Shown here in pieces: positions 9,886 through 31,469 of a DNA stretch of 64,000 nucleotides; position 1 is the first letter of the stretch, and every line of letters starts with the position of its first letter. The stretch spans positions 186,001 through 250,000 of the forward strand of contig CDRNVI010000054.1 of NCBI GenBank assembly GCA_977017575.1, written 5' to 3'. The notes under the pieces were generated by a model. That model ran no database searches, had not been told where the DNA came from, and saw only the letters and a list, made by a program, of their open reading frames with translations. This stretch comes from Paramoeba atlantica. Its lineage: Eukaryota; Protista; Discosea. The position numbers and the translations under genes were made by a program.

Positions 9886-12682
9886 GGTTTGCTGAACGTG
9901 GGTAACACAGAAGTCTAGCACCAGAACGGCCGCCAGGCCAGAGCTCGGAAGGAAGACATCTCCTGGCCTCGTGAGGCCGCCACCAGGGCCGCGGTTCCCA
10001 AGACTCTTTTAAAGTTGCGGAGCGAGATGTGTTTTACTGCACACCGTAATGAAGTGCTCCACTAGCGCGTTGTGCCGGGAGATAAGGCCATAGCCACTTT
10101 TACACACCAGGGCATGGTTCCCCTCGCGCCCGAGAGGCTGCGCACACTTGGTCATAGGACAGGGCCGAGATTCCACGTAGACGTCAGCTCCCAGCCACCA
10201 ACGGGTGAGAGCGCGTTGGGGGTGGTTCGGTGGCGAGGAATTCTGTCAAAAAGACGGGGCAGGGCAGGCGACAAGGGTGTTTATTTCGAAGCTTTGAGAG
10301 GGTTTCTGGGCTGTCTGGCGCCATCGGAGAGGCCGTAAGGGCTGCCATACCCCGGGAAAATTCGCCTTGTCGTGCGGGGAGCTCTGCGCGAATGGCTGCT
10401 CGCTTCTCGTCGTTGTGAAGGGTTTTCGGAGAACTATGTTGCTTGTTATTGAAGGAGGAAATTGCATCATACCATAGGTCAGCGTATTCGCGCGCTTGCC
10501 AACGCTCTAGGCACTTGAGAACGTGGTTGGCGTACGAAGTATGTCCTTTGCGCCCCCCACGATAAGGGGTAGGGAGGACGCACTTCGGGAGCATCGCTAA
10601 GAGGGTCAAAGCGCAAGTAGTGTTTTCCTTCGCCGCGGCAGCCATCGCCTCGGAAAGAGCCGACGCCCAAAGTTGACCCTTGTGCCCTCCAAGTGCATCC
10701 GTCCGCGGGACAAACACGAGATTCTGTGGGCATGAAGAGGGGAAGTGTGGTTGCGGAGAGATTATTGGAATGGAGAAGAAGCGATCGTCGTGCAGAGTAC
10801 GGGGTATCGGGTCCCGGATTCTGTTCCACTCCGCCTCGCACGAGTTCGTTTTTTACGCTCGCTTGGGTCCACCCGGTGCTGGTCTCTAGCTCTAGGGCAG
10901 GCGAGGTGAGGTTTTGCAATACGCGGGGAGGGCCTGGGTTCCACTCCACTCCCCCTCGTAAAAGACCGATATCTACCTGGGTCTTGCTCCACCCTGAGTT
11001 CGCGATAAGCTTCTCGCTGGGCGTGAAACACCAGTGCGGTCCTGAGGGGGAGGGCACTTCGCACCACGCGGGGGCGAATTCTGGGTCGATACCTAAATGT
11101 GAACATATAGCAACCGATAATTTGTTATTAGGCACGCTGGAGGGGACAGTGATGGACGTCTCACCTGTCGGGTATCCGTAAATGAGGACTCTGTTTCCTG
11201 ACGACTTTGCGGCGTTGTAAGGTATCCGAAGAGCAGTGCCTAAAGTGACTAGGGGTGATATGTTGCTGAGCTTCTCGGTTAAATCCATAGTGGCTCCGGT
11301 TGCTGAATCAACGAGTGTCACGAGCTCACTGCGGAGCCCCAAACAGAGCGCGATCTTGTCTCTAACTGAATCCAGATGGGTGTGAGACGGAACACCTGGG
11401 AAGGTGAGCTTTTCCCCAGGCGATGGGCAAAGAAGGAGACGAATTGTAACGTCGACGGTGCTGTCGTCATCTAGATCGTCATCCCAGCCCGGGCCGATCC
11501 AGTCCTCCAATTCAGTTTCCTTCATGTTTCTCTCGGCCTTTTGCATAAAAGGCGAGTTAGCAGACGGCGTTCTTGTGAGGGCTTGAAGTTCCCGGTGGAA
11601 GGTCTCTACTTTCTCTACAATCTCGGAGCTTTCCTCTAACAGGATACTTCTTTTGGCGTCCATAGCTTTGCGAAACGCAACCTTGATGTCGTGTTCAAGG
11701 TGTACTTTCTTGTGCTCAATCAGTTGGTCGGCAACCATCAGTTGCTTTGAACAGGTGTTGCAAACGTGTCCCTTTTTCTCTATAATGGAGAGCTTTCGGG
11801 CAAGAGCGAGATGCCACTCGCGTCTTGAGTTAAGGTTTTGGAGAAGGAGATTGTGTCTGGAGACGAGCTCCTGGGCGACTAATTGAACGAAGGAGAGTTC
11901 TTTTTCGGTTGAACGGATCTCGTGCTCTATGTCCGCTATGAAACCGTTTTCAGGGACCCGGTTTCTCTTTAGAGTGGAATGTGATTCTTTATTTAGCTTC
12001 TCAAACAGGGAAAAACGTTCCTCCAATGAAAGAATGTGTTTCGTCTTTCCCGTAGGGGTTTCGCTTTCGCTAGAGGAGAAGGGGTAGTTACTGCGCGTTA
12101 CCCCCTTTAGTGCTTGGACGAATGTTTTCTTCGGCCGTTCGGTGTGTGAAGCGAAGGAAGTTGCAGTTCTGGCAGGAGGGCGTGAGGGGAGCTTTGACGT
12201 TCCCATAAATCGGGGAAGCTTCGAGGACGGAGTTCCGGTGTGATCTCGTGGGGCATGAGGGGATTCGAAGTCGCACGCATCACAGCGATTGAAATAGGGG
12301 CGTTTAGGGCTGAAAGGGGACGAACACACTTCGCAGGGTTTAGTGAGACCCTGAGAAGTGTTTGAACAAGACAGTGCGCAGGACTCACACCACCGGAAGT
12401 AAGGCCTAGCGGGAAAGAACGGGGCGGAGCAAGCAGCACATGATTTTGAGTGCTGGGTGGGCTTGGAGGGTTCGTCGCCGCGCGTGGCTGGACGGAAGGG
12501 TACGAGCGAATGGTGGGATGTAATGGGGGCTGTGAGAATTTGGGCGAGCATTTCGCGCAAAATCGGTGGGCGGGGTTATGTGGGACAAAACGTGTGCCAG
12601 TGACAACACCAGAGCTTCCCCCCTGATCGAGGGTCATTCATTGGCGTATGTAAAGTCAATAGGAAAGAAAAGAGAAATAATT
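9886..12682 (-). mobile_element. CRE-clade retroelement (copy g): SL-headed, RT deleted; zinc ribbons, C2H2 finger, two 2A-like motifs
   Basis: ORFs 10479-12560 and 10184-10717 (LLAMLPKCVL...LRNKHP) join directly to RWWLG...CPMTKC...NHALVC...RPGDVF...LDFCVTH at about 10215; no RT motifs between them. Confidence 0.85.
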
Positions 12683-12701
12683 CAACAAGGTACAGAAACT
12701 G
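12683..12701 (-). ncRNA. SL exon, right half (CAGTTTCTGTACCTTGTTG)
   Basis: Abuts the 3' terminus of the YR element; the matching left half lies at 24770-24783. Confidence 0.85.
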
Positions 12702-12820
12702 AGGGTGTTGCCAATCCCTGGTCAGTAATCGGCCCAGGGACATAGCAACTCCCCATTATCTCGGGCGTAGTAAACACGCCTTGGCTTGCCTGGCACTGAG
12801 ATCAGCCATTGGAAAAAAAA
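12701..12820 (-). repeat. 3' terminal segment of the YR element
   Basis: The reverse complement of 12701-12812 is identical to 23279-23390 (112 nt), extending into a T-run. Confidence 0.92.
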
Positions 12821-13378
12821 CCCTTTTTTTTTCGTTAGAGGCCTCCTTTCTCAGCCCAGGGGCTTCCCACTTAAGGGGCCCGTTCCCACAACCAAGTGAT
12901 CTCCCCGGCAACACGATTTCATTCGTGCGTCAAGAAGGCTGGGCTATGGGACCAGGGAGCTCTAGAACAAGTGCAGCAACTTGTGAGCCTAATTCGACAT
13001 GAAATGATAGTAGGATTAAATTAGTTCATACTAAAACTAAATTATAAATTGCATGTACTGAAAACATAAAAAAGGAAAAATAACACGCGCATAGCTTATT
13101 ATGCGGTCTTAAAAGATTTTGTATTTCAAAATATTTACATGGTCATAAACAAAAATCCAGTAAAAGCAAATTACCTGTAAATTTTAGATTCTGCATTTTC
13201 TTATTATGTCTAATCATTCGACTCGAATGCTGACGGGGTTTCTACTCTCACTCTATGCGTGGACCTTAGACGAGTTGGCTACGGATTTTCCGTAACTGGA
13301 GCAATAGAGATGAATATACTGGTTCATTTTTTTTTAGGGTAGTCCATTCGCCTTCGCAGCTTCGTTTACTTGTCAATC

Positions 13379-15136
13379 TCAGATTATGATTGGGTCCATA
13401 TGTGAGAGAGCGATTTCGACTCCTCCGGGCAAAAGACCGTCTTTGACTCGGAATCCGAACTCTTCCCGCGTTAGGCCGTCTGCTGGATTCTCCTTAGATT
13501 TGAGATAAAAGATGCGAAACGATAGCCCACTCTTTCTCCTTTCTTCGATGTCTAGGAGATGCTGACAAATTGAATGTCGAACTGATGTGCGCTTTTGGAG
13601 TGCCCGCAGAACGTCCATATTATCGCATCCTAGAATCACATGGGGAGCAAGTTCCCACCCTTTGATTAAGGCGGCTTTTGCCGCAGAGAACTCCGCATCG
13701 TATATATCTCCCGATACAAGTATTGGAATACTTTCTTGCAGCAAAATTTCTCCCGATTGACGGAGTACGCATAAACCAGTGTGGGTCGAAGATGCGTCCG
13801 AAAAAGCAAGAACGAGATGGGAAATTGGAATTGGCGGTAATGCGCAACTTCTCTTGTCACTCAATATACGCACTACATGCATGCTCAAGAGCTTTAAGTC
13901 TTCGCTCTTCAATTTGTAAAAGCTTTCTTCGGATAGGTGCGATATCTCTTTCGCGATCATTCGAACATCATAAACTGAAGCAAAGGAGGATTGGGTGACC
14001 ATTGTATCCCACATGATCACACCTATCACCCTCTTTATGTCTCGCACGGTCGTAGGTGACACCGTTTCTAGTACTCTCCAACGAGCAATGTTAGATTCAG
14101 CGTGTTTCCAAAATAAATTGCCTATTTCCCAAGAGAACTCTATTCCTAAAAATAGGGCTTGATCACATGGGCCGTCGATATATTTCCATTCGACGTTGCA
14201 ACCCGTTGGCGGTCTCTTCATGCTTTTCATGAGTTGCGATCTTAACTGACTTAAAAAACCTTCGTTGCTAGATATGACCAACACATTGTCAATCCAAACA
14301 AATACTGCACCTTGTTTTGCTTTTGTCTTCTTATTTATCGCCCACGCGAATGCCGGAGGTGATTCAGATGTGTCTCGGACAGGTAACATCTCATAACCTG
14401 TAGTACAAGCCGCTAAAACAATTATCCATGCCAGACATTGGGCAAGATAAGGAGCCCAAGAGAACCCCATTGGGAGAACTCGCAACTCGAAAGTCTTGTC
14501 CTCGCATTTTATTGAGAATATGCGACCCAAGCCTGATGGGATTCGTATTTGATGAAAGAAATGACGAATGTCCGCAATCAAGAATTTTCCACCTGGAAAG
14601 CATGATAAGATGTGTGTGACTTCTGCGAGAGCTGGAAAGTTTAGCCTAGGGGGAGTAGCGCATCTATCGTTTATAGGGGTGCAATCTACGATGCTCCGAG
14701 ATGAAATTTCATCTTTTGGCACTTCAAAGTATCGTAAATAAAGGCGAAAATCATTACGAAAATCCTGAACTCTGCGCAGTACTTCATACGAACAAAGCTC
14801 AGCTAAGTGATCACACCATTTTGCTTCAGAATGTACCCCAAGTTTCCCACGAAAGCCTTCGAATTCCGTGAAAAGACGAAATGAGTGTTCATTAGTGAGT
14901 ATGGTAAGGCACTTTTTTCCCCACGTGTACGTGCTTCGAGATGCAATAGCGCATAGAGTATCGATATGAAGACGACCTGCAACCGAAATGGGATCAAGGG
15001 CCCGTTGCTTTAGTGTACAGGACTTTTGGAGGACTGCACCATATGCCGTTCCATATTCTAGGTTGTTCGCGGGTTCGTTCATTAATACTATATTATATCC
15101 CAATGTCAAAAGACGAATAAACCTACGTTTATTCAT
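13379..15136 (-). CDS. DIRS/VIPER-type reverse transcriptase + RNase H
   Basis: IADIRHFFHQI, LPMGFSWAP, VWIDNV; RNase H motifs FSDAS, AEF, GCDN, KENPADGLTR. Confidence 0.88.
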   Translation of the reverse strand: MNKRRFIRLLTLGYNIVLMNEPANNLEYGTAYGAVLQKSCTLKQRALDPISVAGRLHIDTLCAIASRSTYTWGKKCLTILTNEHSFRLFTEFEGFRGKLGVHSEAKWCDHLAELCSYEVLRRVQDFRNDFRLYLRYFEVPKDEISSRSIVDCTPINDRCATPPRLNFPALAEVTHILSCFPGGKFLIADIRHFFHQIRIPSGLGRIFSIKCEDKTFELRVLPMGFSWAPYLAQCLAWIIVLAACTTGYEMLPVRDTSESPPAFAWAINKKTKAKQGAVFVWIDNVLVISSNEGFLSQLRSQLMKSMKRPPTGCNVEWKYIDGPCDQALFLGIEFSWEIGNLFWKHAESNIARWRVLETVSPTTVRDIKRVIGVIMWDTMVTQSSFASVYDVRMIAKEISHLSEESFYKLKSEDLKLLSMHVVRILSDKRSCALPPIPISHLVLAFSDASSTHTGLCVLRQSGEILLQESIPILVSGDIYDAEFSAAKAALIKGWELAPHVILGCDNMDVLRALQKRTSVRHSICQHLLDIEERRKSGLSFRIFYLKSKENPADGLTREEFGFRVKDGLLPGGVEIALSHMDPIII

Positions 15137-15432
15137 TAGTAATCAAATGGCGGAATGCATAGCTGTGCGCCACATAAGAAATAATCGTTGTACAAGACAA
15201 ACTTGTACAAGACACGTATGATTTCACGTAGAGATTTAGGACATTATTGGAGGAAGGTCTCATAGTTGTAACACTCGATTTGTAACGACTCTCTTTTTTA
15301 TAGCTTCCAACTTCTTTCACTTAACGTTTCGACTTGAAAACCAAACTTTTAGTATCTTTAATTTAGTGAAACAAGTCTCCAAGGAACTAGTTTACATGGA
15401 ACTAACTATATTATGAACTAATTACGCAGAAG

Positions 15433-15457
15433 AAGATACAGTTTCTGTACCTTGTTG
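15433..15457 (+). ncRNA. SL exon 3' part (25 nt) heading RLE element c
   Basis: AAGATACAGTTTCTGTACCTTGTTG, then AATTATTTTC and an ATG at 15497. Confidence 0.85.
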
Positions 15458-18400
15458 AATTATTTTCAATTTTGTACTAAACTTATCTCTCGGAGCATGT
15501 CCTCCAATGTTATCACATCTGCTCCCGACGCGCACGACGGCCTTCCTCGAGGACCTGTCAGCGCGAAGCAACAGAATTTCCACTTCATCCAGAGTCGCGC
15601 GGTACCAGTGAAACTTCGACTCGCTTCAAGCGTTCAGTGGTCATATTTTCCGGATGCACACGCCGCGGCTGTCTTTTTTACCGATAAGAAGTTCTTCTCG
15701 AGTGTACACACTGCCGAAGCTTCCCTAAACAAGACTCTAAAAACAGAGAACAAAAGAAGTGACGGGCTAGTCGTCGGTAAATGCACAGTACAGAATGTTA
15801 TGGACCATGGTGCATGCGAATACCTGGAATATAAAGAGAAGAAACCACCTCACCGCACTTTCCGCCACGCCAGCTGGACGTCCGCTTTTCACGACTCGGA
15901 GATGTGTCTCGACTCGCATTATTCGTCTCCCCAAAACTTAAGCAAGGCAGTGATGAAAAAACTAAACGGCGACAATGTCCCTGGACTGTCCCAGTATGAA
16001 ATAAAACATATAGCGCGAAGCACTGAGTCCACAAGCGGGACTTGGCTACAACATCAAATCACCTACGATGCTGCATACAGGATTCGGGAACAGCCAACAG
16101 GACCGGAAACCTCATCACAACCTACAAAGCCACGTCAACCATGCAGCCACAAATGTCGCGACAAAAACTCATGCCTGCATGCGTGCTGTAAAGTCACCGC
16201 CGTGGTTAATCCGCCCGCAGAAGCTACCGCCGTGGGACCGAATAGTACGGAAAGGGAGGCACCACTTGTCACAACAACGAACTCCATCCGTCACCATACG
16301 AATACGGAGACGCGAAGACCTTGCAAGCACACCCGTCGCGACAAAACAAAATGTCTACACAGTTGTTGCAAAATTGGTGTGCTCGTATCCAAAGACGAAC
16401 TGATGGAACTTGCATTCCGCACAGCCTCCAATGGATCAACCGGTTACACATACGAACTTTACCCCTGCCCACTCGATCGATGCCCACCCCGATATGACGA
16501 CTATCACATGCACGAACACGGAAAATCGCATACACGCACATGTAATAGAAACTAACAGCTCGGAAAGGAGTCTCGCAAGACCAACACGACTTATGCCCCA
16601 CACACAACCACCGCCACAAGGGAGCAACAGCGATCCTAACGCAACAGAGACGGCCAACCGGGACAACTACCGTCCATGCAAGCATCAGTGTGGCAATAAG
16701 ACTCTATGTAAGCACAAATGTTGCAAGGAGGGAGTCCGCATCAGTCCAACGGCGAATAGAAACCACTCATGGTCATTGCGAAATCTAATTCCGTGGACAT
16801 CGGCTTCCACGGATGTAACCGAAATTCCCACAGCAGAGACGCCAACCACGCGAACGGAGACCACGGAAGGGACCATGGGAGAAATTCCACTTCCCAACAC
16901 CCAGCCTCCCGGCACCGCCCCCAACGAACCGTCCCCCAGTAACGAAAATGACGTATCACGAGACACAAGACCACGTCGTCCCTGCAAGCATAAGTGCAAA
17001 GATAAATCGCAATGCCAACACGCCTGCTGCCAAAAAGGCACGCTCGTGAGAGCTGGAGAAATCGCCTGCTCTGCAATATCCTGGACTGTACGAAACCTCC
17101 TTATACTCGATAGACCGACCCAACCGACCGCACTGCCTGCCCCCCAGGAAGTTCAACCATCCTCACAACCTGAGCCCCTCGCCGACCGCTTTCCAACAAC
17201 CCCCGTCGCAGATTCTCCCCCGCATCCTGCAAACGCCGCAATGTCTACTGAACGACGCCCAGATCCGATCTCAGACCGCTCATACCACAACGGTGCCCAC
17301 ACTATACTCCAACGAACCCCACGAACAAACGCATCGCATGCCACACCACCCTGTCCACGCTCGGAGCTCGAGAGCATGCTTGAAACATTCCGCACCATTC
17401 AAGGTGGACGTGCCCTGGTGCACTTTGACACTAGCCAATGGGATCTCACCATCTCAAGAATTGAAGGACGTTGCAATGCATTCATGCACCCTGCGCGAAG
17501 TAAAGAAGACGCGCTGTTCCAAGCTGAAGTCATTTTTGCCATCTTGGCTGTATCCGTCTACGAAACTGCGAAAGAGATTAACCCCACACGCGGGTTTCTA
17601 TTTCGAACCCGAACAGGCAGGTCCAAACGTAGCTCACGCCCCCTTGCCATCGACCGTACTCTCAAGTCATTAAATCTACACGTTCGTCAACTAAAACGGT
17701 CACTGACCTTTATGCACGGCCCAGAGCGAAATGCCCAAAGAGGGAGGATAAAAGAAGCACACAAAGCGCTAAAACTATACGAGGAAGAAGCACGCCTACA
17801 AAAAATGGAAATCGAACGACGGTGGGCTCAAACTCGATTTCAACGCAACCCGTGGACAGCTGCAGGGGAGTGCTTAGACCACCACGATGCAGATCGCGAC
17901 GGGAAAGACTCATTATATCCCACAGTGCCCATCCAGGAGGTCAAACGCTTCTTCGAGACATCCTTGACCAAACCGGACGGGACATTCAGCATCCCACCAG
18001 ATGAGTTTACCGAACCTAGACCACGTGGACACATGGAATGGGTCGAGATAGATGGACCCACCATTGCCGCAGCCATATCATCAAAACGTTCGGGGGCCGC
18101 CCCGGGGTCAGATACCATAACCAACATCTTGTTAAAGCGTTGCCCTTCCATCTACTCGGTCGTCGCGCAGGTATTCAACGACATACTCAAATTCGGCGTA
18201 TGCCCGCCGACATGGAAAACGGCCGTCACCCGACTGATCCACAAAGGAGGCGACACCAAACTCATGGAAAACTGGCGCCCAATTAGCCTTACCAGCTGTC
18301 TCGGGAAACTTTTTCACTCAATCATAAGTCATCGCATCCTCCACCACGCCCTCGATTCTCACGCCATAGACACGTCGATACAAAAAGGTTTTCTCCCCCA

Positions 18401-20316
18401 CATGAATGGTACTGTAGAGCGCACTCAAGTTGTATGTGAACTCCTCGAATACCAAAGATGCCACAAACGACAATACTGTCTAGCACAGTTCGACATCAAA
18501 AATGCTTTCGGGTCCGTACCCCATACTGTGCTGTTACAGGCTCTAAAATGGGCGCGCGTATCTCCAATTATCGTTCAATACATAGAACAACTCTACGAGA
18601 AAGCATCCATTCAAATCAAGTGCGCTGAAGGTCTTACAAAACCCATCCCGATAGATCGAGGTGTATTGCAGGGCGATACTGTCTCCCCCATACTATTCAA
18701 TCTTGCAATGGAGTTGGTTCTGCGTTTCGTTCGATCAAGCTGCCCACAATATGGGATCACATGGGATGACAAAGAGACCTTTCTCAAAGCCTTCGCCGAC
18801 GACCTTACCATCATTACGAATACCCCCAGGGAAATGCAAAATACCACCAATGTCCTTGTAAAAGGCCTTTCCGACATTGGGATGAACCTCAACGTTAAAA
18901 AGTGCCGAATTCAGCACATGTCAATGACGCAAGACTCGGGTTATATGACTCGGCGTCCTCAGCTCACAATCAATGGAGCTCCGATTCCCCAGATATGCGA
19001 CAAAGGAAGCACCTTCTTAGGGATGACGCTTGCTCCAGGTGCACAACAAAGCAAGATTCTCTTCCAGAAACTGCGAGCTCGTCTGCGCATGTGGCTACAA
19101 AATATTACGAATAGTGCCCATGACCTGCCCGCACGACTCTGGATATACAACCAGGGTGTCATCTCGCGTCTTCGTTATTCCCTTGTTGTGAATACCTGCC
19201 TCTCGTTCAACCACGTGCTTCGTCTTCAGAGGTACGCTACACAAGCGATCCGTAAATGGCTCAACCTCGCCAAAACAGCCACGAGTGAACTTCTCTACTC
19301 CGAACACGGGTGGAACCTCCTGAGCTTGTCTAAACTGTGGCTCTTATGCACAGCACAAACTACTCAGCAAATGGAGAAATCAAAGGATCCTGCTGTCAAG
19401 TATTCATTGCGCGAACGTATTCGTCGAGAACAAGCGAAGAGACAATCCGGGCACATTCGACCCTCAATTGACATTCAAAGCCTCCACGGCGGTAATGTCC
19501 GAAGAGTACTTGCAACTGAATATGAGCGTCACCTTTCCCAAGCTGTTCAACGACGTACGACCGTAGCTGGGCAATGGTTCAGGATGGCCACTGAGGCGGA
19601 TCTAGCGAGGGATTTTGCCGCTGCACTATGTAATCTGAAAAGCGAGAGCCTCTCAAGATTTACGGCATCAGTTATTACTCAGACCCCCCTTCCTACGAGG
19701 GCATCACTCCGCAAATGGGGCGTTTCAACCCACACCAGCGACAAGTGCCCGATATGCAGAACCGAAACGCAGACCACACGCCATATCCTCTCCGGGTGTG
19801 CAAAATCACTCGAACAGGGCTGATACACCCTGCGGCATGATCTAGTCCTCCAAACCCTAGCATACTGTGGCCAATTCTCCTGCAACAAGACTCGCGCACT
19901 TTGATCTTCCTCAGTTCCGCTCCACTCCGTCGTGGCTCACAAACTTGGACACTGAGCTCCGACCGGACGGCTGGGTGAAACTGGCGAACGGGGAAGAATA
20001 TATCATAGAGCTCACTTGCCCCTGGGAGGAGAACTTTGCTTACGCACATGAACGGAAAATGAACAAGTATACAAATATTTATCATTCCAGGAGGCTTGAG
20101 CACCCAGCCACCTTTCTTCTGGTGTTCGAAGTAGGCGCAAGAGGGAAGCTCCACAGCTCAGCTCGAGCTCTGAACTCTCTTTTTCTTGGAAACGATAGCC
20201 TCATCGAAGCATGCCGACAAAGTATGACCCAGAGCGCACTGCGAGGAAGTTTTCAAATTTTTCAGCACCGCGATGACGTAAACTGGATCTATGACCCAAA
20301 TTCAAACGTTGCTTGA
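15458..20316 (+). mobile_element. HERO/NeSL-like RLE non-LTR retroelement (copy c), pseudogenised, nested inside the YR element
   Basis: ORFs 15452-16555, 16410-19823 and 19867-20316: DIKNAFGSVPH, QGDTVSP, FADD, CPICRTETQTTRHILSGC, LRPDGW...IIELTCPWEE...KY. Premature TGA at 19821, where the paralog reads GRYTLRHD. Confidence 0.9.
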
Positions 20317-20458
20317 ACTAAAAGTGAATTAAACGCGTTGTGTGCGCGGATAACGGAATTATTTTCCGATATTCACTTTACCAAATCTCTGCAGATTAAC
20401 TGTATGATAATATGATAGGAGAAAATCACGCGAGTGGCTTTTTGTTTCTTTCCGTTCT

Positions 20459-21335
20459 CTAATCATGCACTTGAGAACGCGGTGCTAAGTAGTGCTTCTG
20501 TCTCACCTGTCTCGACATGCCCGACAGTGCACTGGACATCATGTCAGCGACGTTTTCTACTATGGCCCCAGTACCACCATGTCTCAGAGTGTGAGTTCCA
20601 TCAAAAGTCACTCCAGATGGCCATCCCAATTCGGTGGATGCTCTTTTTACAAGTTTACTCGTGGACCCTTTCTTGTACGCCGGAAACGCAAGGTCTCCAT
20701 GTGTTACGTCACGCAGGGCATTTCGCACTTCTTCGGTTGCAACATGAGTAAGAGGTTTGCACTTTTGCTTATCAGTTGAGTAACTCTTTGTTTTATCGTG
20801 GCGGATGAGAAGATGAGAACAAGAGCCTTCTACACGCAAATCCCCGCCACGTATCTTCTTCACAGGGTCGAAGAGCAGCGTAGTATTGCACGCGAAAAGC
20901 TCTTGCGAGCTGCGGCCCGTTAGCACGGGGTGTGACCCACCGTACAAGTTCGTGTAACATATTTTCTGATACATAGCCTCTGGGACATTTTTCTTGTCTA
21001 TGCTGCTCTGCCTCAATGGCAGCCCCGTCCACTGCCCGAAGTATGAGGCGGTCGCCTGCCCAGGGGCGTTCACCTGCTTCGAGGTCAAAGTTTTGACATT
21101 CCTGATAGAAGAGCAGGGCACTGCGGTAACCTTGAAAAGTCGATTTGGCGCATCCAACCGATGCGTGATGCCACAAAAAACATCCGAACGCTTCTTTCGT
21201 TATTTTTTCGAATCCTCGGTTCTTGCAAAACTTTCGTAAAGCAGCAAATCGGGCCTCGTACATCCTTCGCGTTCCGGGTGCAATCGACTTTAATGCCAGA
21301 GCTGCCAGATACCCTTCGCAAGAATCTTTCTGCAT
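20459..21335 (-). pseudogene. Tyrosine recombinase, frameshifted
   Basis: Two overlapping ORFs together give ALRPCE (R), HDKTK (K), GTHTLRHGG (HxxR) and KHYL (Y). Confidence 0.85.
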
Positions 21336-22035
21336 CTAAAAGTATGCAAAAATACTAAATGTGTGTGATTACATGGTTTATTTACATATACCGTATGCAA
21401 TCTCATATCTTCAACGGAATGGCCAGTTTAATATATTTAACTTTCCATGTGTAAAATAGCGGATGAAATAACAGACTGTTTTGTTGTAGACACACTTATT
21501 CATTCAGTTCATTTTGTCTTATGGTTTCCCCGATTTTCAAGGAGAAACTGCACCATATTATGACTTACTTTTAATCTGGATGCCACCCATTTGCCCCTTT
21601 TTGGTATTCCAACAAATTGTGCTTAATGATTAGGCACCTACGTACTAGATACACTGTATGTTAATCTGATGGGAATAATTATCACACTTTCCCTCACTAT
21701 ACATGTATTACTTAACGTCTAAGTAATGTGCAAAGCCCATTTTCTTTCCACAATGTCTATGCTGTATAAAGGCGTCTGTTGTGTGTGAGTGTCACTCGTT
21801 GTATGACAAATACACACAATCCTAATGATCTGCACAAGCAAATAATAATATTCGTGCTCTATGTTCAGCCCAAACATGAATCTGATTAAGAAAAACTAAA
21901 ACATACATCTATTGCCCCCAAGATCGGCAATCACGGCCCCTTTTCATGTTTATTCTTTCGATCGTTCATTTCCCGAGAAAACTTTTCTGGCCGTTCTAGG
22001 CCTTTGACGAACCCTTCTCGATTAGAACGATAAGA

Positions 22036-22974
22036 TCAAGGGGCATACAAATTTACTGGTCGCGGGCGGTTGAAATAACGCACATCCGGCCCAAATGTTC
22101 TTCTGTTGTTTTGGACCATGCCTCCCCGTCCATAGCCTGAAGTACTATTTTGGAAGGATTTCGCCTTCAAAAGAGTCTCCGGTATAGTTACGGAGTCGGT
22201 CTCTGGGAGCAATCCGACGTTCTTGCGGCAAAGAAGAAGAGATTCCTCTTTCTTTACGTCGTCAAAATCGGCGCGGAACACAAGAAAATGAGCAGCGAGT
22301 TCTAGAAGGAAATGGTTAGCTGCTATTGATACCGCCTTGTTTTCTTGTGCCGCCTTGGGGGATACACCTTTTCCTGCTTGCGTAAGCATCTCCTTGAAGA
22401 AAATAGCGTAGCGGGTTAGAAGAAAGCTTTCGGCCCATTTTTGAAACTTCGGGTTGTGCACTGCTTCCCACAGTTGCCCTCCAAGGTGAGGACGATTCTC
22501 CGTGCCTGTCCATACAGTAAGTTGCCCGTCCTCCTTTTCTCCTTCCCGTGCTTTCATTTTCTTTGGCTCCTTCGGGGGGTCCAGCATGAGGGAAACCAAA
22601 ATTCCTCGATGTTCTTCGTTTCCAATCAAATTCTCGAATTCGGAGACGTCCTGTGTTCGGCGGACACCCAAAAGTTTGGCTGTAAAACTTGCTTTTTCAC
22701 TGAGGGTTTCTCCCCCTAATACCTTTTCAACGAAATCCATGATTGCACTTGCGCATTCGTCTTCGCTGATTTCCGCCATAAATTTGACAAGGAGATTCAC
22801 ATCGACTGCGCGCTCAAAACGTAGAGAAATTTTTATGCTCGTTTTCGTCGAGCATGCCTGGTCGACTACGCTATCGACGTTTGCGTCAAAGTGGTGAGTG
22901 TGGCCGACTATAGGAACTGAGCGGCTTTGTGAAGCTTGGAGTGAGGTAGCTACGGAGGGTCGTTTCTTCGGCAT
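22036..22974 (-). CDS. Gag-like ORF1 of the YR retroelement
   Basis: 312 aa ORF with a helical-looking core and a basic RG-rich tail, upstream of YR on the same strand; assigned by position only. Confidence 0.55.
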   Translation of the reverse strand: MPKKRPSVATSLQASQSRSVPIVGHTHHFDANVDSVVDQACSTKTSIKISLRFERAVDVNLLVKFMAEISEDECASAIMDFVEKVLGGETLSEKASFTAKLLGVRRTQDVSEFENLIGNEEHRGILVSLMLDPPKEPKKMKAREGEKEDGQLTVWTGTENRPHLGGQLWEAVHNPKFQKWAESFLLTRYAIFFKEMLTQAGKGVSPKAAQENKAVSIAANHFLLELAAHFLVFRADFDDVKKEESLLLCRKNVGLLPETDSVTIPETLLKAKSFQNSTSGYGRGGMVQNNRRTFGPDVRYFNRPRPVNLYAP

Positions 22975-23270
22975 AAGAAATAAAATTTAGAGCAAGTTCC
23001 TATGCATGTTTTAATAGATTAGATACGGTTGTGACTTATCCTGGTCATCTTTGCTCTCTCATTCTATATTCACCCTTTCTGTATTTCCACCCTCACGCTC
23101 GCCAGAATATGGATACTTGCTGACTGCTTTATGTCAGCATATTCCTGTTTCTCTCTGTTTTCTCTCTCGCTCTTTTTCCTTACTACTTCAAGCAATCGGC
23201 GAAACTAATGTATTCATCTATACATACGCCTTCTGTATTTTTTTTTTCTGCTTTCTATTCTTTCGTCTTT

Positions 23271-23432
23271 GTTTTTTTCCAATGGCTGATCTCAGTGCCA
23301 GGCAAGCCAAGGCGTGTTTACTACGCCCGAGATAATGGGGAGTTGCTATGTCCCTGGGCCGATTACTGACCAGGGATTGGCAACACCCTCATTATCACAG
23401 GCTTCATAAGCACCTTGATACCGGGACCAAGC
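23271..23432 (+). repeat. Internal complementary region (inverted 3'-end + 5'-end junction copy) of the YR element
   Basis: 23271-23391 matches the element 3' end (12700-12820). 23390-23432 matches the 5' end (24727-24771; 19 nt identical, then a few mismatches). The halves join at CA (23390-23391). Confidence 0.88.
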
Positions 23433-23828
23433 CCAGTGACAGGAATACCCATTGGCACCGCAGATCAGCTCCCTCCTCCCCTTCTTGTCATCATTCTAGG
23501 TTTTCAAACGTGAGACAAAACTCTAAGGGGCGTGGAATCTGTTGAGCATCTTTTATTAGATACTTCACACAGATGCGTAGCCGTAAAGGCATTGCATTCG
23601 AAATCCGTGGAATAATGAACGCAGTGCAAAACTGACCCGACTGCGCAAGTCGTATAAGGTGCGTCACACTGGCAAATCCATTTTTTTTTCTTTCTATCCA
23701 TTTTTTTTCATTACTTCCAGTACCCTGGAAAGCAACACAGACAGCAGTGGTACTGTGTGATGATCAGCAATATTTGCTTACAATAATCATTAAATTTACG
23801 ACTACGAGAAGCCAATCCTCAATGATCA

Positions 23829-24343
23829 CTCGAAGTGAAGTGCCAACCGTCAGTCCTGAAGGACTTCGAGGCAAAGTGTAACCACCAACCGTCAGTTCCG
23901 AAGAACCCCGAGGTGAAGTGCCAACCGTCAGTCCCGAAGGACCTCGAGGCAAAGTATAACCACCAACCGTCAATTCCGAAGAACCTCGAGGCGAAGTGCC
24001 AACCGTCAGTCCCGAAGGACCTCGAGGCAAAGTATAACCACCAACCGTCAGTTCCGAAGAACCTCGAGGTGAAGTGCCAACCGTCAGTCCCGAAGGACCT
24101 CGAGGCAAAGTAAAACCACGAACCGTCAGTTCCGAAGAACCTCGAGGTGAAGTGCCAACCGTCAGTCCCGAAGGACCTCGAGGCAAAGTAAAACCACGAA
24201 CCGTCAGTTACGAAGAACCTCGAGGTGAAGTGCCAACCGTCAGTCCCGAAGGACCTCGAGGCAAAGTATAACCACCAACCGTCAGTTCCGAGGAACCTCA
24301 AGGTGAAGTGCCAACCGTCAGTCCCGAAAGACCTCGAGGCAAA
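23829..24343. repeat. 78 bp minisatellite (alternating 36 + 42 bp subunits, 13 subunits)
   Basis: Core AACCGTCAGT.CCGAAG.ACCTCGAGG recurring at alternating 36/42 bp spacing; gives 26 aa periodicity in the ORF track. Confidence 0.95.
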
Positions 24344-24769
24344 TAATAAATTGTTATTATAATAATAATAATCGTCGACCGTGAGTCACAAATTTCCTCG
24401 AAGTAGTTCATTTTGGCGCCGAACGGTATGTTTTCCCCGGTCAGGGCCAAAACGAACCGGAATAAAATCACTAATTTAGTGCCAGGCTCGGTTCCACATA
24501 GCATGTCAACATGTAAATAAAATTTATATCCTATCTTTGGGTCGGAACCAAGGATTATAGTGTGTATATTCAACAAACCTGTATGTTCAAATAAATCAGT
24601 ATGTTCAACATATCTGTATGTTTAACAAACGAAGAGATGGACAAATATATTAAAAAAAAAGTCGTACCTTATCGTACAATAAAACTCTTCACCCTCACAC
24701 TTCGTCTTGTTAAGAAGACGACGCCGGGCTTGGGACCGGTATCAAGCGTGTTTATGAAGCCTGTGATAA

Positions 24770-24783
24770 TGTATCTTTATCGT
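24770..24783 (-). ncRNA. SL exon, left half (ACGATAAAGATACA)
   Basis: 14 nt exact SL match directly abutting the YR element 5' terminus TTATCACAGGCTTCATAA. Confidence 0.8.
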
Positions 24784-25049: not shown

Positions 25050-28000
25050 TTATTTAGCGTAGCAGTTCGGGTTCTCGATTCTGCGCTCGTGGGGAAGTGA
25101 GTTATACTTCTCTGACTTCCGCCGGTGTGCGTTTTCGCAGTTCTCCTCCCACGGGACAGTTAGCTCAATGATGAACTCGGTCCCGTTCCGTAGTTTGATC
25201 CAGCCATCCGGGCGCAGTAAACGGTCGCTACTGGTGTACCACGGGGGTGGGTTCCGTTCACCCGTGAGGTCAAAGTGGCAAGCTTCGGTGGCAGGGGATT
25301 GGCGTACGTGTCGTGCGAACTCGCGGAGAACCATGTCGTGTCTTAGTGTGTACCTCCCTTGTTGTAAGGATGTGTTGCATGATGAAAGGACGTGTCTTGT
25401 TGTTTGTGGTTTGTCTCGGCATATGGGACATTTTGTATCAGAGTGATAGTTGCGACCCCATTGTGCAAGGGATACTCGGGAGGGCAGGGGGGTTAGAGTC
25501 ATGACGGAGGACATGAATCGCGAGAGTTTCTCGTTTCGGATCCCATGGATGGCAGATGCAAATTCTTGTGCCATTTCTGGGTCTGACGGAAACTGCCACC
25601 AGAGGGCAGCAACAGGAGCACGTTGTCGTAGACGTGTAATCATTTGTTCTTCGTGGGCATCACGGAGTATTTGTCGTGCGCGCTGTGGGTCGTTAAGATG
25701 ATCGGTTATCTGTGCAGCTGGGCGGATTTGACCTTTCGCACGCTTCCTTTGCTCTTCCTGGATGCGGAAGCGCAATGCCTTGAGCACGTTCGGGTCTCGT
25801 GATTGATGCATTTGGGTAAGTGACGTTCCGGTGCACTCGTACCAGAGTTGTGTCAGACTTTTGAGATTCCAGCCGCGGCAGGAGTATAGTACTTCTGTGC
25901 TACCGGCACGAGCCATGTTAATCCATCGTCGAATGTGTGCTGTGACTCGCTTCTGAAGCCGCAGAACTGAGCTGAAAGAGATGCAGGGGTGGATGGTAAA
26001 CTGAAACCGAAGTCGGGAAATTATAGCGTGTCTGTAGATCCACAGCTTAGCCGGGAGATTATGGGCGCTGGCACTCGTGTTTTCGAGCCATCCCTTCAGC
26101 TTTGAGTTTAATTTCTTGAAAAGTTCGTTTAGCTGCTGAGATCCAGGGGCGAGGGTCATACCAAGAAATGAGCTTCCGGCGTCACAAATATGTGGAATTT
26201 TTTCTCCGTATGTGGTTACTGCAGGTCTTCTCGTCATGTACCCCGGGTGCTCTTCGCCTTTCCGCGTGCTCATACATTGGACTCGACTTTTTGTGACGTT
26301 GATTTTTAATCCGATTTTGGAGAGCACCGTGGTTAGTGCGTTCAGCGAAGTTTGCATGTCACGGTCACTTTCGGTCAGAATGGTTAAATCATCGGCATAC
26401 GCTTTCAAGAAGTTGTTATCGCCGTTGGGAAGGCGCATGCCAAAGGTTGGACACGAGAACCGAACGTATCGTAATACGATTTCCATGACTACTAAGAATA
26501 TAGTGGGAGAGAGTGTATCGCCTTGTAAGACTCCCTTCTTTACATGTATGGGACGCGTTAGACCTTCGTAACATTTAACTCGTATGTGTGCATCAGTGAG
26601 GCTGTCTTTGATGTAGTCGACAACGTTGCAGGGTATGCCTGCCCAACCTAGGGAAGCTAGTATAATGTTATACGGGATCGAACCAAAGGCGTTAGTGAGG
26701 TCCAATTGGGCAAGACAGTACTGTCGTTTATGTCGCTGGTAGTGCTGGAGGAGGGTGCATAGAGTTTGGGTGTGCTCCAATGTCCCATTGATTTCGGGAA
26801 GAAACCCTTTCTGTATTTCCGGGTCAATCACATTGTGTCCAATAAGATGTTGGGTCAGGCGATGCGATATGATTGTGTGAAACGCTTTACCAAGGGCGCT
26901 CGTCAGTGAAATGGGGCGCCAATTTTTGGGGTTTTCCGGTGCTCCGCTCTTATGTATCAGCCTAGTGATTGCAGTTTTCCATGATGGAGGGCAGGTCGAG
27001 AAAGTCATCAGATTATTGAATACCTTAGCAAATTGATCATGCATGGATGGACATTTCTTAAGAATCAGATTGGTGATCGTGTCTGCACCGGGTGAGCTGG
27101 AGTTCCGTTTCATATTGATGGCTGCTGTGACATCGTCTCGCGTGATTGGGTCCCAATGCATGGGTTGGGCGGCTCCTGGTCCGAGTACATCTGGAGGAGG
27201 CAGTTGGAAGAGTTCTTCACTGGGTTTAAAGCTTGACTCGAAGTATGTCTCTATGGTGTTCCGGTCGCAGGTCGGGTAAGTTGTATTCTGTACTTCATTA
27301 GCGTCAGGTTTGTCGATCGTTTCTGAAGCTGCTGTCCACGGATTTCTGGAAAATCGCTCGGAGGCCCAGCGCTGATCGATTTCTTCTCTTTGTTTCGTCG
27401 CTTCTTCCTCACGTATCCTGACTAGCTTTCGACATTCTTTGATTTGTGCTCGTAATTCGTCTCGTTCCGTCCTACTTCTCGTATAGCGTAGCGAAATTTT
27501 CAAGGTTGTGAGATGGTGTTTCAGTTCTTGTGCGACTCTCTCCGTGGCGAGTGGTCGATACCTTCGTCGGGCGTGTCCGGTGCTAGCTCTGATGAGGAAG
27601 CCCCTTGTCGGATTCGCTTCCGTCGCTATTTCGTAAGCAGATACGGCTAGGGCGGCGCTAAGAAGTTCCGCGTTACGTATAGTTGTCTTCCTGTCCGTTG
27701 TATCGCTTAGAAGTTCGTTGCAACGTGCACTTGCTCTCGCTTCAACCTGTCGCCATTGCTCTTCGCTGAGTCGTATGGTAACCTTCCCGCCAAGTATTGC
27801 ATTGTGCTTTTGCAGGAGTTCTACTGCTTTTTGACTTTGAGAGGCGTCAGATTGCACTGTCGGCGTGGAGGGTTCAACTTGGGAATGTATGTTATTGGGT
27901 ACTGTTGTTGGGGATTCACAACCGGTTTCGTTCCCTGGTGCATAGGGTGGCCCAAATACTTTGCAACATAGGTGTGCGCACTCAAGTTTGTTTCGACACG

Positions 28001-29903
28001 TGTGGCGGCATGGCTGTACAGTGCGCAGTGTCGGTGCACTACGGTTCTGTTGAATGCGACTCGGTGATGCTTCTCTGCGTGAGATACGTTCGTAACTGAC
28101 TTCTTCCGCTTCCTCCAGTCTTCGATGTACTGTAATGCGTAGATGTCTGAGATGTGGTATATCCATTCCGTTAAGCGCCTTCATGACTGCACGGCCTAGT
28201 GCTCCCGCTGTTGCATACTTCTCGTTGAGTTTAAGTGTATTATCTTGGAGAAGGGATGTCCAGCTGGCATGCCGACTGATGTGTTGACTATTTTGTTCTT
28301 CGATATGTATGTAGTCGCATCCGCGGTGGTCCATGAGTTCTTCAGTTGTGGAAGGCTCGACAACCAAGTCATGAGAGTTGCTTTTACCAGATAACATTTT
28401 CGAGAGTGCCGCTTGTGCTGCTTGGAGAGAGGTTATTCTAGCCCGGACGAGAGGAGATTCGCTGGCACTTCGAATATCTGGAAAGTATGTCCAGATCAGG
28501 TTTGCTACTGTTCGCACTTTCACGGGGCGGGCTCTGCTCTGGACAAAGTGAAGGTATTGCTTTTGCCGTGGTTCATGGTTTGTGTCAGGTGGTGCGGATT
28601 CGTCCCTGTTCTGTGTCGCGCTGCTTTGAAATACCCAGCCAGGGACTTCATCGTTTTCTCCTTCCTGTTCCCTGGGACAAGGCATGATTAATTCTTGCTT
28701 TTCCGTCAGCTTTTTCACCTCGTACATCTCATTGTGGTTAAGCGTGACTGTTGGGTTTGCTGGTAAATAGGGATTGCTTTCTTTCTCGACTGCAGTCGTG
28801 AATGGCTGGGATGATGTGCATAGTTTCGTGGGGCTTGTGGTTGCGGGTTCTGGTTTTCCGTCATTTTGTGGCATAGTGTCTACTTGTATATAGAAAAGCC
28901 TGATATACCAGAGAATTATTCGTTGTGCAAGTTTCATGATGTCAAGAGCGGTCATGCTCAGTGGTTGCTTTTTCAACCGTGCGACGTTTGAACAAAATTT
29001 CTCGTGCATTATTCGTATCCGGGGCAGTAAAAGCAGAGGCGATCGGAAAATGTCATACGTTTTTCTGCAAGAAGAAGTAATGAACCTGATGGTACTACCT
29101 GTGCACACATATACCATGTTCATACATTGGACAATGTGTAATGGGTTTGCTGCTTCAGAAAGCCAACCTGTTAATAGGGACAATAGGGTTTGAGTGTTCC
29201 TTGTGATGACTAGTAGTACGTGACCAAAGGGTCCATTGTTTGTTGGCACCATATTTATGACTTTCTTCTGGGAGTGTCGTATATGACGTTTGCAACAAGG
29301 GTGTTTGCAGGTGACTTTGTTCAGACAGATGTGCCTACACGGTTTTGTCGTGATACTTTGTGTGCCAACATTTCGACGGAAAGGATTGAGGGCGTTGGGT
29401 GACGGGATTGCGCGGATGGGTGCTACTAGGAGGTGAACGGCGAGGCTAGATATCCATCTGAAGACGTTAGATATGATGATGCCAATATTCCGCATGTTGT
29501 AGAGAGTTCTGAATACTAGTATAATTGATCGGGCCATGGCAAGCGGGGAGACTTCAAAATTCCTTCGTTTCTTTGACATAACGGTATGTGATGTTACGGT
29601 GTCGCTATCCGTTATACTTTGCGCAGTTAAGTGACGCTTGCAGCACAAGTGTAAGCATTCACGTTTATTCAGACACTTGTGCTTACAGGGTTCCGCTGGG
29701 GACGATGCGGTGGTATTCGCCGAATTGCCAGTCACATGCTCGGTTTGCGTGACGTTTAGCAGATTGTCGGGAGTACTTCCGTTCTCGTTGGAAGAGGCGT
29801 CAGGATGGGTGGGAGTTGCGCTTTGCTTGCGAACGCCGCGTGGTCCTCGTGTAAGGTCCTGCGGCGCATTCGAGTGGGATCGTTGCGCGCGGTGTCGCGC
29901 CAT
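25050..29903 (-). mobile_element. HERO/NeSL-like RLE retroelement (copy d): 1617 aa ORF, 3'-truncated within the RLE
   Basis: DLTNAFGSIP, QGDTLSP, YADD, CPICRDKPQTTRHVLSSC, LRPDGW...IIELTVPWEE...KSEKY; lacks the LLVFEVGARG tail present in copy c. Confidence 0.92.
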
Positions 29904-31430: not shown

Positions 31431-31469
31431 CAACAAGGTACAGAAACTGTATCTTTATCGTTAAAGTTT
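31431..31469 (-). ncRNA. Full-length SL exon copy (39 nt)
   Basis: AAACTTTAACGATAAAGATACAGTTTCTGTACCTTGTTG; longest SL match in the window and equal to the canonical mini-exon length. Confidence 0.85.

Follow-up and report, generated by a model that had tools for sequence, protein, structure and literature searches.

A retroelement encoding a tyrosine recombinase (YR) lies precisely inside a copy of the spliced leader (SL) sequence in the 64,000-nucleotide stretch of DNA analysed here (the window; Paramoeba atlantica, GenBank assembly GCA_977017575.1, contig CDRNVI010000054.1, positions 186,001 to 250,000 of the forward strand). We observed that the family to which this element belongs has its ends at about 14 loci of the 45.7-Mb genome, and that about 12 of them carry SL halves at the identical position and in the identical orientation. 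We consider it highly probable that the YR inserts the element as a DNA circle, at a common CA, into SL DNA, mostly into the retro-copied leaders of long and short interspersed nuclear elements (LINEs and SINEs). No earlier case of SL homing by a recombinase-based mobile element seems to be on record; the element itself is of the DIRS/VIPER/TATE kind. A full-text literature search on YR elements with SL, SL RNA or target specificity yielded no report of an SL-targeting YR element, and, to our knowledge, the euglenozoan SL has served as a homing site only for endonuclease-based LINEs.

The window copy interrupts a single SL sequence

The window copy is 12,070 bp long, runs on the − strand from 24769 to 12700, and interrupts one SL copy between GATACA and GTTTCTG. 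At the left junction (− strand, 24783–24760), the 14-nt SL 5′ half (ACGATAAAGATACA, 24770..24783) is followed by the element start, TTATCACAGG. At the right junction (− strand, 12712–12683), the element end ...CACCCTCA, which at 12700 reads ...GGCAACACCCTCA, is followed by the 17-nt SL 3′ half (GTTTCTGTACCTTGTTG, 12683..12699). When the flanks are rejoined without the element they form an exact 31-mer SL, with nothing duplicated and nothing lost, and CA alone is common. The stretch CAGTTTCTG lies within the SL sequence. The joined 31-mer occurs 648 times in the genome (up to two mismatches), on many contigs and on both strands, and the 19-nt SL core is present seven times in the window against an expectation of zero. 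The first-pass annotation of the window had proposed that removal of the element restores an SL exon; the junction strings that it quoted were all found in place, and its restored site agrees with the 31-mer.

Upstream of the left SL half we found the 3′ end of another LINE, whose open reading frame (ORF) extends from 25050 to 29903, while the right SL half continues into the 5′ untranslated region (UTR) and the ORF (10479–12560) of the LINE whose leader was interrupted.

Each terminal 18-mer of the element, 5′ and 3′, is present twice in the window, where none is expected. The second copies of the two are joined and inverted at 23374–23409, so that the internal junction, CACCCTCA-TTATCACAGG, reads on the + strand at 23384–23401, inverted relative to the element. 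The inverted match to the element 3′ end covers 120–125 nt at 98%; at the 5′ end, 18 nt match exactly, and the match continues imperfectly out to about 46 nt.

The annotation had also drawn attention to GATAA and TTATC as short inverted arms around a 7-bp spacer at the left junction. The symmetry is indeed present, but its role as functional arms found no support: the arms are 5 nt long, they occur only in the hybrid left junction, which is a product, and they are absent at the off-target copy described below. It was therefore rejected as a feature of the site.

The family occupies SL sequences at about a dozen genomic loci

We gathered both termini and both junction types across the genome and read their flanks, counting near-identical contig pairs once (for example C4/C9, C19/C43, C45/C54, C44/C70 and C3/C30, in our numbering); from these pairs, the assembly seems to hold two haplotypes. 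Junction patterns searched at two mismatches gave chance matches; a match on C53 turned out on reading to be unrelated DNA, and every match at that level was dropped.

The SL 5′ part (GATACA or a one-base variant) precedes nine of the 10 5′ ends, and upstream of it nine different sequences were observed, including a LINE 3′ end, poly(A), an SL stutter, a full CTTTA-extended leader and truncated leaders. The SL 3′ half follows the element at eight of 10 loci with a 3′ end (one degenerate), and at least seven different sequences lie beyond it, corresponding to the 5′ UTRs of different LINE and SINE families. The orientation is constant, the element 5′ end adjoining the SL 5′ half. SL copies account for about 0.05% of the genome, and the chance of one insertion at one bond and in one orientation is about 1e-5.

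Four subfamilies, A to D, could be distinguished, and each is present in SL. Subfamily A is the window type and is autonomous; B is non-autonomous, with 78-nt and 83-nt arrays that vary in size; C has CACGG; and D (C87) is altered on both sides of the terminal stem.

These results bear on several claims of the first-pass annotation. It had described a single event, which proves instead to be a property of the family, and the tabulation of flanks that it suggested revealed SL halves joined to many different outer sequences. Copies in unrelated DNA that share CA alone, the outcome that it regarded as contrary to an SL preference, are represented by at most one young copy, which itself has CAGTTTnTG. 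Its designation of the site as an SL exon needs correction: the targets are mostly retro-copied leaders heading LINEs and SINEs, and were not shown to be SL RNA genes.

Some features of the leaders and of individual loci were recorded during this census. Most SL copies (loci L057–L086; 8843 and 31459 in the window) are preceded by CTTTA, then often poly(A), and the leader may be at least 36 nt long, judging from these copies. LINE copies often stand head to tail. On C30, the right junction is duplicated at 384509 and 384951 (L036, L037), 442 nt apart, the repeated unit running from about 35 nt before the element end, through the SL 3′ half, to nt 390 of the LINE. In a rearranged copy at C237:8885–8968 (L051), the 3′ end and the internal junction copy are fused head to head via the terminal hairpin, forming a palindrome beside an SL 3′ half. 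The copies at C4:136818–143956 (L087) and C9:613571–616580 represent one insertion in two presumed haplotypes; they differ by about 4 kb, accounted for by expansion of the 83-nt tandem array that separates the 5′ end from the internal junction copy. Contig C30 holds five or six loci of the family and its presumed partner, C3, gave no match to the terminus patterns; hemizygosity of the C30 insertions, or absence of the corresponding part of C3, may be the reason.

A young copy with the same ends lies outside the SL

One young copy, on C19/C43, is 98% identical to the window copy and has the same exact ends, and lies outside any SL; a separate ENA assembly contains it as well. Because this copy has no SL halves, these are not part of the element. 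Its insertion site, AACTATCA|GTTTATGG, has only CA|GTTTnTG in common with the SL, a partial match that fits what would be expected for an off-target site of a sequence-reading enzyme. In the same copy (C19:74868 and C43:222663; L052, L054), the flank 6 nt past the crossover is GGTGTTGCC, the exact inverted complement of GGCAACACC near the element 3′ end; this pair may be a second half-site or a coincidence.

The other end without SL is an old 240-nt 3′ fragment on C65. Two related families were also found outside SL, each as one copy: family 2 (C21/L090), with a YR 52% identical to that of the window family, and family 3 (C29/C16), with a YR 60% identical. At L098 (C29:400700–402300), the end of the latter, ...AACACGCTCA, is followed by TTATTTACATAGC, which is similar to the window family's 5′ terminus; this locus may thus represent an insertion into the junction of a relative.

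Structure and coding capacity of the element

Read on the − strand, the element consists of a 5′ terminus, a 78-nt repeat array, an internal complementary region (ICR), a gag-like ORF, the YR gene, the reverse transcriptase (RT)/RNase H ORF and a 3′ terminus. The 5′ terminus (A1, 24724..24769, − strand) spans about 46 nt, of which the first 18 are identical to the internal junction copy and the remainder match imperfectly. The tandem array (23751..24374, − strand) lies between this terminus and the ICR and shows copy-to-copy length differences. The ICR (23272..23437, + strand) is an inverted copy of the presumed circle junction, formed by 120 nt of the 3′ end (23272–23391) followed by the 5′ end (23392–23437), and is 98% complementary to 12700–12819. 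The gag-like ORF1 (22036..22974, − strand) encodes 312 aa in the window, against 347 aa in the copies on C19 and C30, and gave no Pfam match. In the window, the YR gene (20459..21335, − strand) is broken into two overlapping frames by a short indel near 20857; the frame is intact, with 293 aa, in the C19/C43 and C30 copies. The RT/RNase H ORF (13379..15136, − strand, 585 aa) ends 680 nt before the end of the element, which is closed by the 120-nt 3′ terminus (B, 12700..12819, − strand) with its conserved terminal stem-loop.

The window copy carries a nested SL-headed non-LTR retrotransposon of 4,984 bp between the YR and RT genes (15432..20415, + strand, opposite to the element), with RT and zinc-knuckle ORFs. 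Since the intact copies on C30 (377587–384526) and C19 (74868–81806), which measure about 6.95 kb and are 98% identical to the window copy, lack this LINE, it is not part of the element; contigs of uninterrupted copies in public runs diverge from the window at 20416. The nested LINE begins with a 5′-truncated SL (GATACAG...) and replaced 6 nt that are present in uninterrupted copies. Its landing in the YR element indicates that SL-headed LINEs can insert outside SL sequences.

The YR sequence recovered 221 relatives in an exhaustive HMMER search. In an alignment of 40 homologues, the catalytic residues R156, K183, H250, R253, H254 and Y284 are invariant or nearly so. Pfam matches of the single sequence remained under the curated cut-offs; the profile matched XerD, XerC (XerC-like), XerH and Cre/Tre chains. 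The AlphaFold model has a pLDDT of 94.4, and its top Foldseek matches are Cre-loxP structures, with a probability of 1.00. The RT ORF matched RVT_1 weakly (E 7.9e-5, below the cut-off), and its nearest Atlas clusters are euglenozoan RT/RNase H proteins. Alignment of this ORF showed an invariant motif A Asp, LPMGxSWxP, a motif C D-N and the RNase H D-E-D-D positions. Motif C reads D-N instead of the usual D-D in all six aligned sequences (the window ORF and five relatives); being invariant, it is probably functional. No ORF of the element had a Pfam match to a methyltransferase domain. Conserved residues and the predicted Cre-like fold thus support the classification as a YR retroelement, in line with the first-pass annotation.

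A stem-loop is predicted for the final 55 nt of the element (z = −4.0 over the 161-nt end). All subfamilies and family 2 retain it, with only two pairs having changes on both sides, and it may serve in priming or as a folded recombination site. Rfam gave no family in the window at gathering score and none in the 3′ end at E values up to 10, that is, no known ribozyme. The 3′ terminus and the matching part of the ICR bear identical subfamily-specific changes; this co-variation is what is predicted if one is copied from the other at each cycle. Flipped or permuted copies, as would arise from integration via the inverted junction, were not found among the autonomous copies.

Proposed integration mechanism and alternative explanations

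The family consists of DIRS-order retrotransposons with the gene order gag-YR-RT/RNase H. In the mechanism that we propose, the element RNA would be reverse-transcribed into single-stranded cDNA, whose ends would anneal side by side on the ICR (18–46 nt of the 5′ end and 120 nt of the 3′ end) and be joined, a step that follows the Cappello model of DIRS-1; the resulting circle would then be converted to double strand. The YR would exchange strands between the circle junction, ...CCCTCA|TTATC..., and the SL, ...GATACA|GTTTC..., at the common CA. A crossover at this position would produce the two hybrid junctions observed, without duplication or loss, which is how the first-pass annotation had explained them. 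Integration would be site-specific and in a single orientation, between ...GATACA and GTTTCTG..., and the leader copies heading LINEs and SINEs (the 45.7 Mb hold at least 648 SL copies) would provide an abundant and probably harmless landing site. This proposal builds on the anatomy of the element, the integrity of its YR and RT/RNase H, the same junction at about 12 independent loci, the one partial-match off-target site and the co-variation of terminus and ICR; beyond these it infers a circle, the exact points of cleavage and strand exchange, and a protein that reads the SL. The annotation's suggestion of an SL-specific YR retrotransposon is supported by the census, with its many different outer flanks.

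Several points weigh against this interpretation. No circle, cDNA or RNA was observed, and the circle junction and the SL have little sequence in common beyond CA. Two loci, the C19/C43 copy and the old C65 fragment, are outside SL. That the SL is the leader of this organism rests on its kinetoplastid-type sequence and on its position at the heads of retroposons. Read support and empty sites, both of which the annotation had asked for, were obtained in part. The window stretch is present as contigs in four public DNA runs of one study, and none of the public RNA runs holds it. The contigs stop at repeat borders, precisely at 24783/24784, the outer edge of the SL half (one from X4 spans 24578–24783), and none bridges the window junction by 31 nt on both sides. 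One X3 contig contains the 5′ terminus and the SL half and goes on into the flank of the C4/C9 copy; such breaks fit a junction common to several loci, and do not amount to a formal bridge. A search with the flanks of three C30 insertions found no allele without the element; all these flanks are young repeats, so that no allelic empty site could be identified. Paralogous empty sites do exist: the LINE behind C30:931519 has at least eight copies, 97–99% identical, with the SL intact, and the LINE behind C30:384526 belongs to the family of the window copy at 31449, where the SL is intact.

Three other explanations were considered, which we regard, even taken jointly, as unlikely. According to the first, there would have been one or a few true insertions, into an SL RNA gene; the interrupted SL RNA would have been trans-spliced onto LINE and SINE RNAs and the chimeras retroposed, so that the contexts in the census would not be independent. 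The downstream contexts do begin exactly at the end of the SL exon, the upstream ones resemble LINE 5′ junctions with poly(A) or SL stutter, at some loci the element is reduced to its 3′ part, the pattern expected from LINE 5′ truncation, and no allele was found with the LINE but without the element. However, the scenario requires repeated full-length retroposition of chimeras of 8–12 kb, as well as trans-splicing by an SL RNA that carries 3–7 kb with many T runs, and full-length copies are no rarer than truncated ones. It also needs a separate source gene for each of the four subfamilies, which would itself imply SL targeting. Moreover, the C19/C43 copy, of the same young subfamily, is a YR-type insertion at an SL-like core outside SL. 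We therefore hold this explanation to be very improbable.

In the second, the 14-nt and 17-nt SL flanks would serve as homology for ectopic gene conversion or homologous recombination, and the insertion would spread in this way rather than by the YR; this would account for junctions that are identical in all SL-borne copies, and SL copies are very numerous. Yet the homology is very short, and occupied sites have variant or shortened SL 5′ parts, such as AAATAAAG, AAGGTACA and ATAAGATACA. The off-target copy has the same ends without SL homology, and an intact YR has been retained together with an ICR that co-varies with the terminus. In view of this, we give conversion very little credence. 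The last explanation, that the SL halves, which almost every copy carries, are the element's own termini inserted at unrelated sites, is contradicted by the ICR junction copy and by the C19/C43 copy, neither of which has SL letters, while the sequences past the SL 3′ half are LINE and SINE 5′ UTRs that follow an intact SL elsewhere and the SL 5′ part varies in length as at other retroposon heads, so that it has next to no chance of being correct.

Within the proposed integration of a circle by the YR, a more specific version can be formulated, which we regard as doubtful. In it, the YR would be a sequence-specific integrase for an SL site of about 10–20 bp, convergent with the SL-homing CRE/SLACS LINEs, and it may in addition act on a folded single strand, with the conserved stem-loop of the 3′ end, of which terminus and ICR each have a copy, as a partner, by analogy with the attC hairpins used by integron integrases. 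Single-stranded cDNA intermediates have been reported for DIRS-1, and action on a folded strand would fit them.

Comparison with known elements

The family shows the features of the DIRS order, namely a YR in place of a DDE integrase, an RT/RNase H, no target-site duplication and an internal junction copy. It lacks those of the DIRS1-like elements in the narrow sense, that is, inverted terminal repeats with the ICR beside the right repeat, and a methyltransferase. In DIRS-1 of Dictyostelium discoideum, retrotransposition depends on the ICR, which has been proposed to act as a splint that brings the cDNA ends together in a circle for YR integration, and in other DIRS elements short junction nucleotides are common with the target flank (PMC7192593). 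Like DIRS-1 and DIRS1-like elements, the family described here is a YR and RT/RNase H retrotransposon; its ICR is an inverted copy of the joined outer ends (33 + 55 nt in DIRS-1, 18–46 + 120 nt here), it makes no target duplication, and the sequence common to circle junction and target is very short (PMC7192593). In contrast, its termini are not inverted repeats of each other, its ICR is located ahead of gag, at 1.36 kb from the 5′ end and behind a tandem-repeat segment of 1.3 kb, instead of beside the right end, its gene order is gag-YR-RT/RNase H, and no methyltransferase domain was found downstream of RT/RNase H. As a target, DIRS-1 favours copies of itself, and this family a single SL position.

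VIPER and TATE, the DIRS-order elements of kinetoplastids, resemble this family in their euglenozoan host, in the order of a gag-like ORF, YR and RT/RNase H, in the lack of target duplication and in having short non-autonomous derivatives such as SIRE (PMC12278014, PMC6681497). They have been described, however, with split direct repeats (A1 ... B1-A2-B2), whereas the junction copy here is inverted and near the 5′ end; this is the sole internal copy of the ends, and the termini were not found repeated in direct orientation. SL targeting has not been reported for them, TATE being named for its association with telomeres. No named VIPER or TATE sequence was among the matches of our protein searches.

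SLACS, CZAR, CRE1 and CRE2 home to one fixed SL position in kinetoplastids (PMC12278014). They use a restriction-like endonuclease and target-primed reverse transcription and have a poly(A) end, in contrast with the YR, the ICR and the lack of poly(A) seen here; the choice of target is the sole feature in common. Elements of the CRE clade enter SL RNA genes at nt 11/12 of the SL exon, whereas this family inserts 17 nt before the end of the exon, which would be nt 22/23 of a 39-nt leader. The likeness to Cre-loxP, Xer-dif and phage integrases concerns the predicted fold, the catalytic residues and the proposed conservative, oriented recombination between circle and chromosome. Unlike in these systems, the partner sites here have CA and scattered bases in common, with no obvious inverted arms around an identical overlap of 6–8 bp, and the enzyme is carried by a retroelement.

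Implications

The circle junction and the 31-nt SL constitute a natural and well-defined pair of sites. With about a dozen independent products, an informative off-target site and naturally intact YR genes, the question of how this recombinase selects its target is directly testable. The inverted junction copy near the 5′ end represents a third terminal architecture for the order, beside the two already known. The family also illustrates convergence, in which an unrelated integration machinery has come to use the same SL target, at a different position. Finally, by copying the leader, LINEs and SINEs create new landing pads for another element at their heads, and this helps to explain the nested transposon clusters of the genome.

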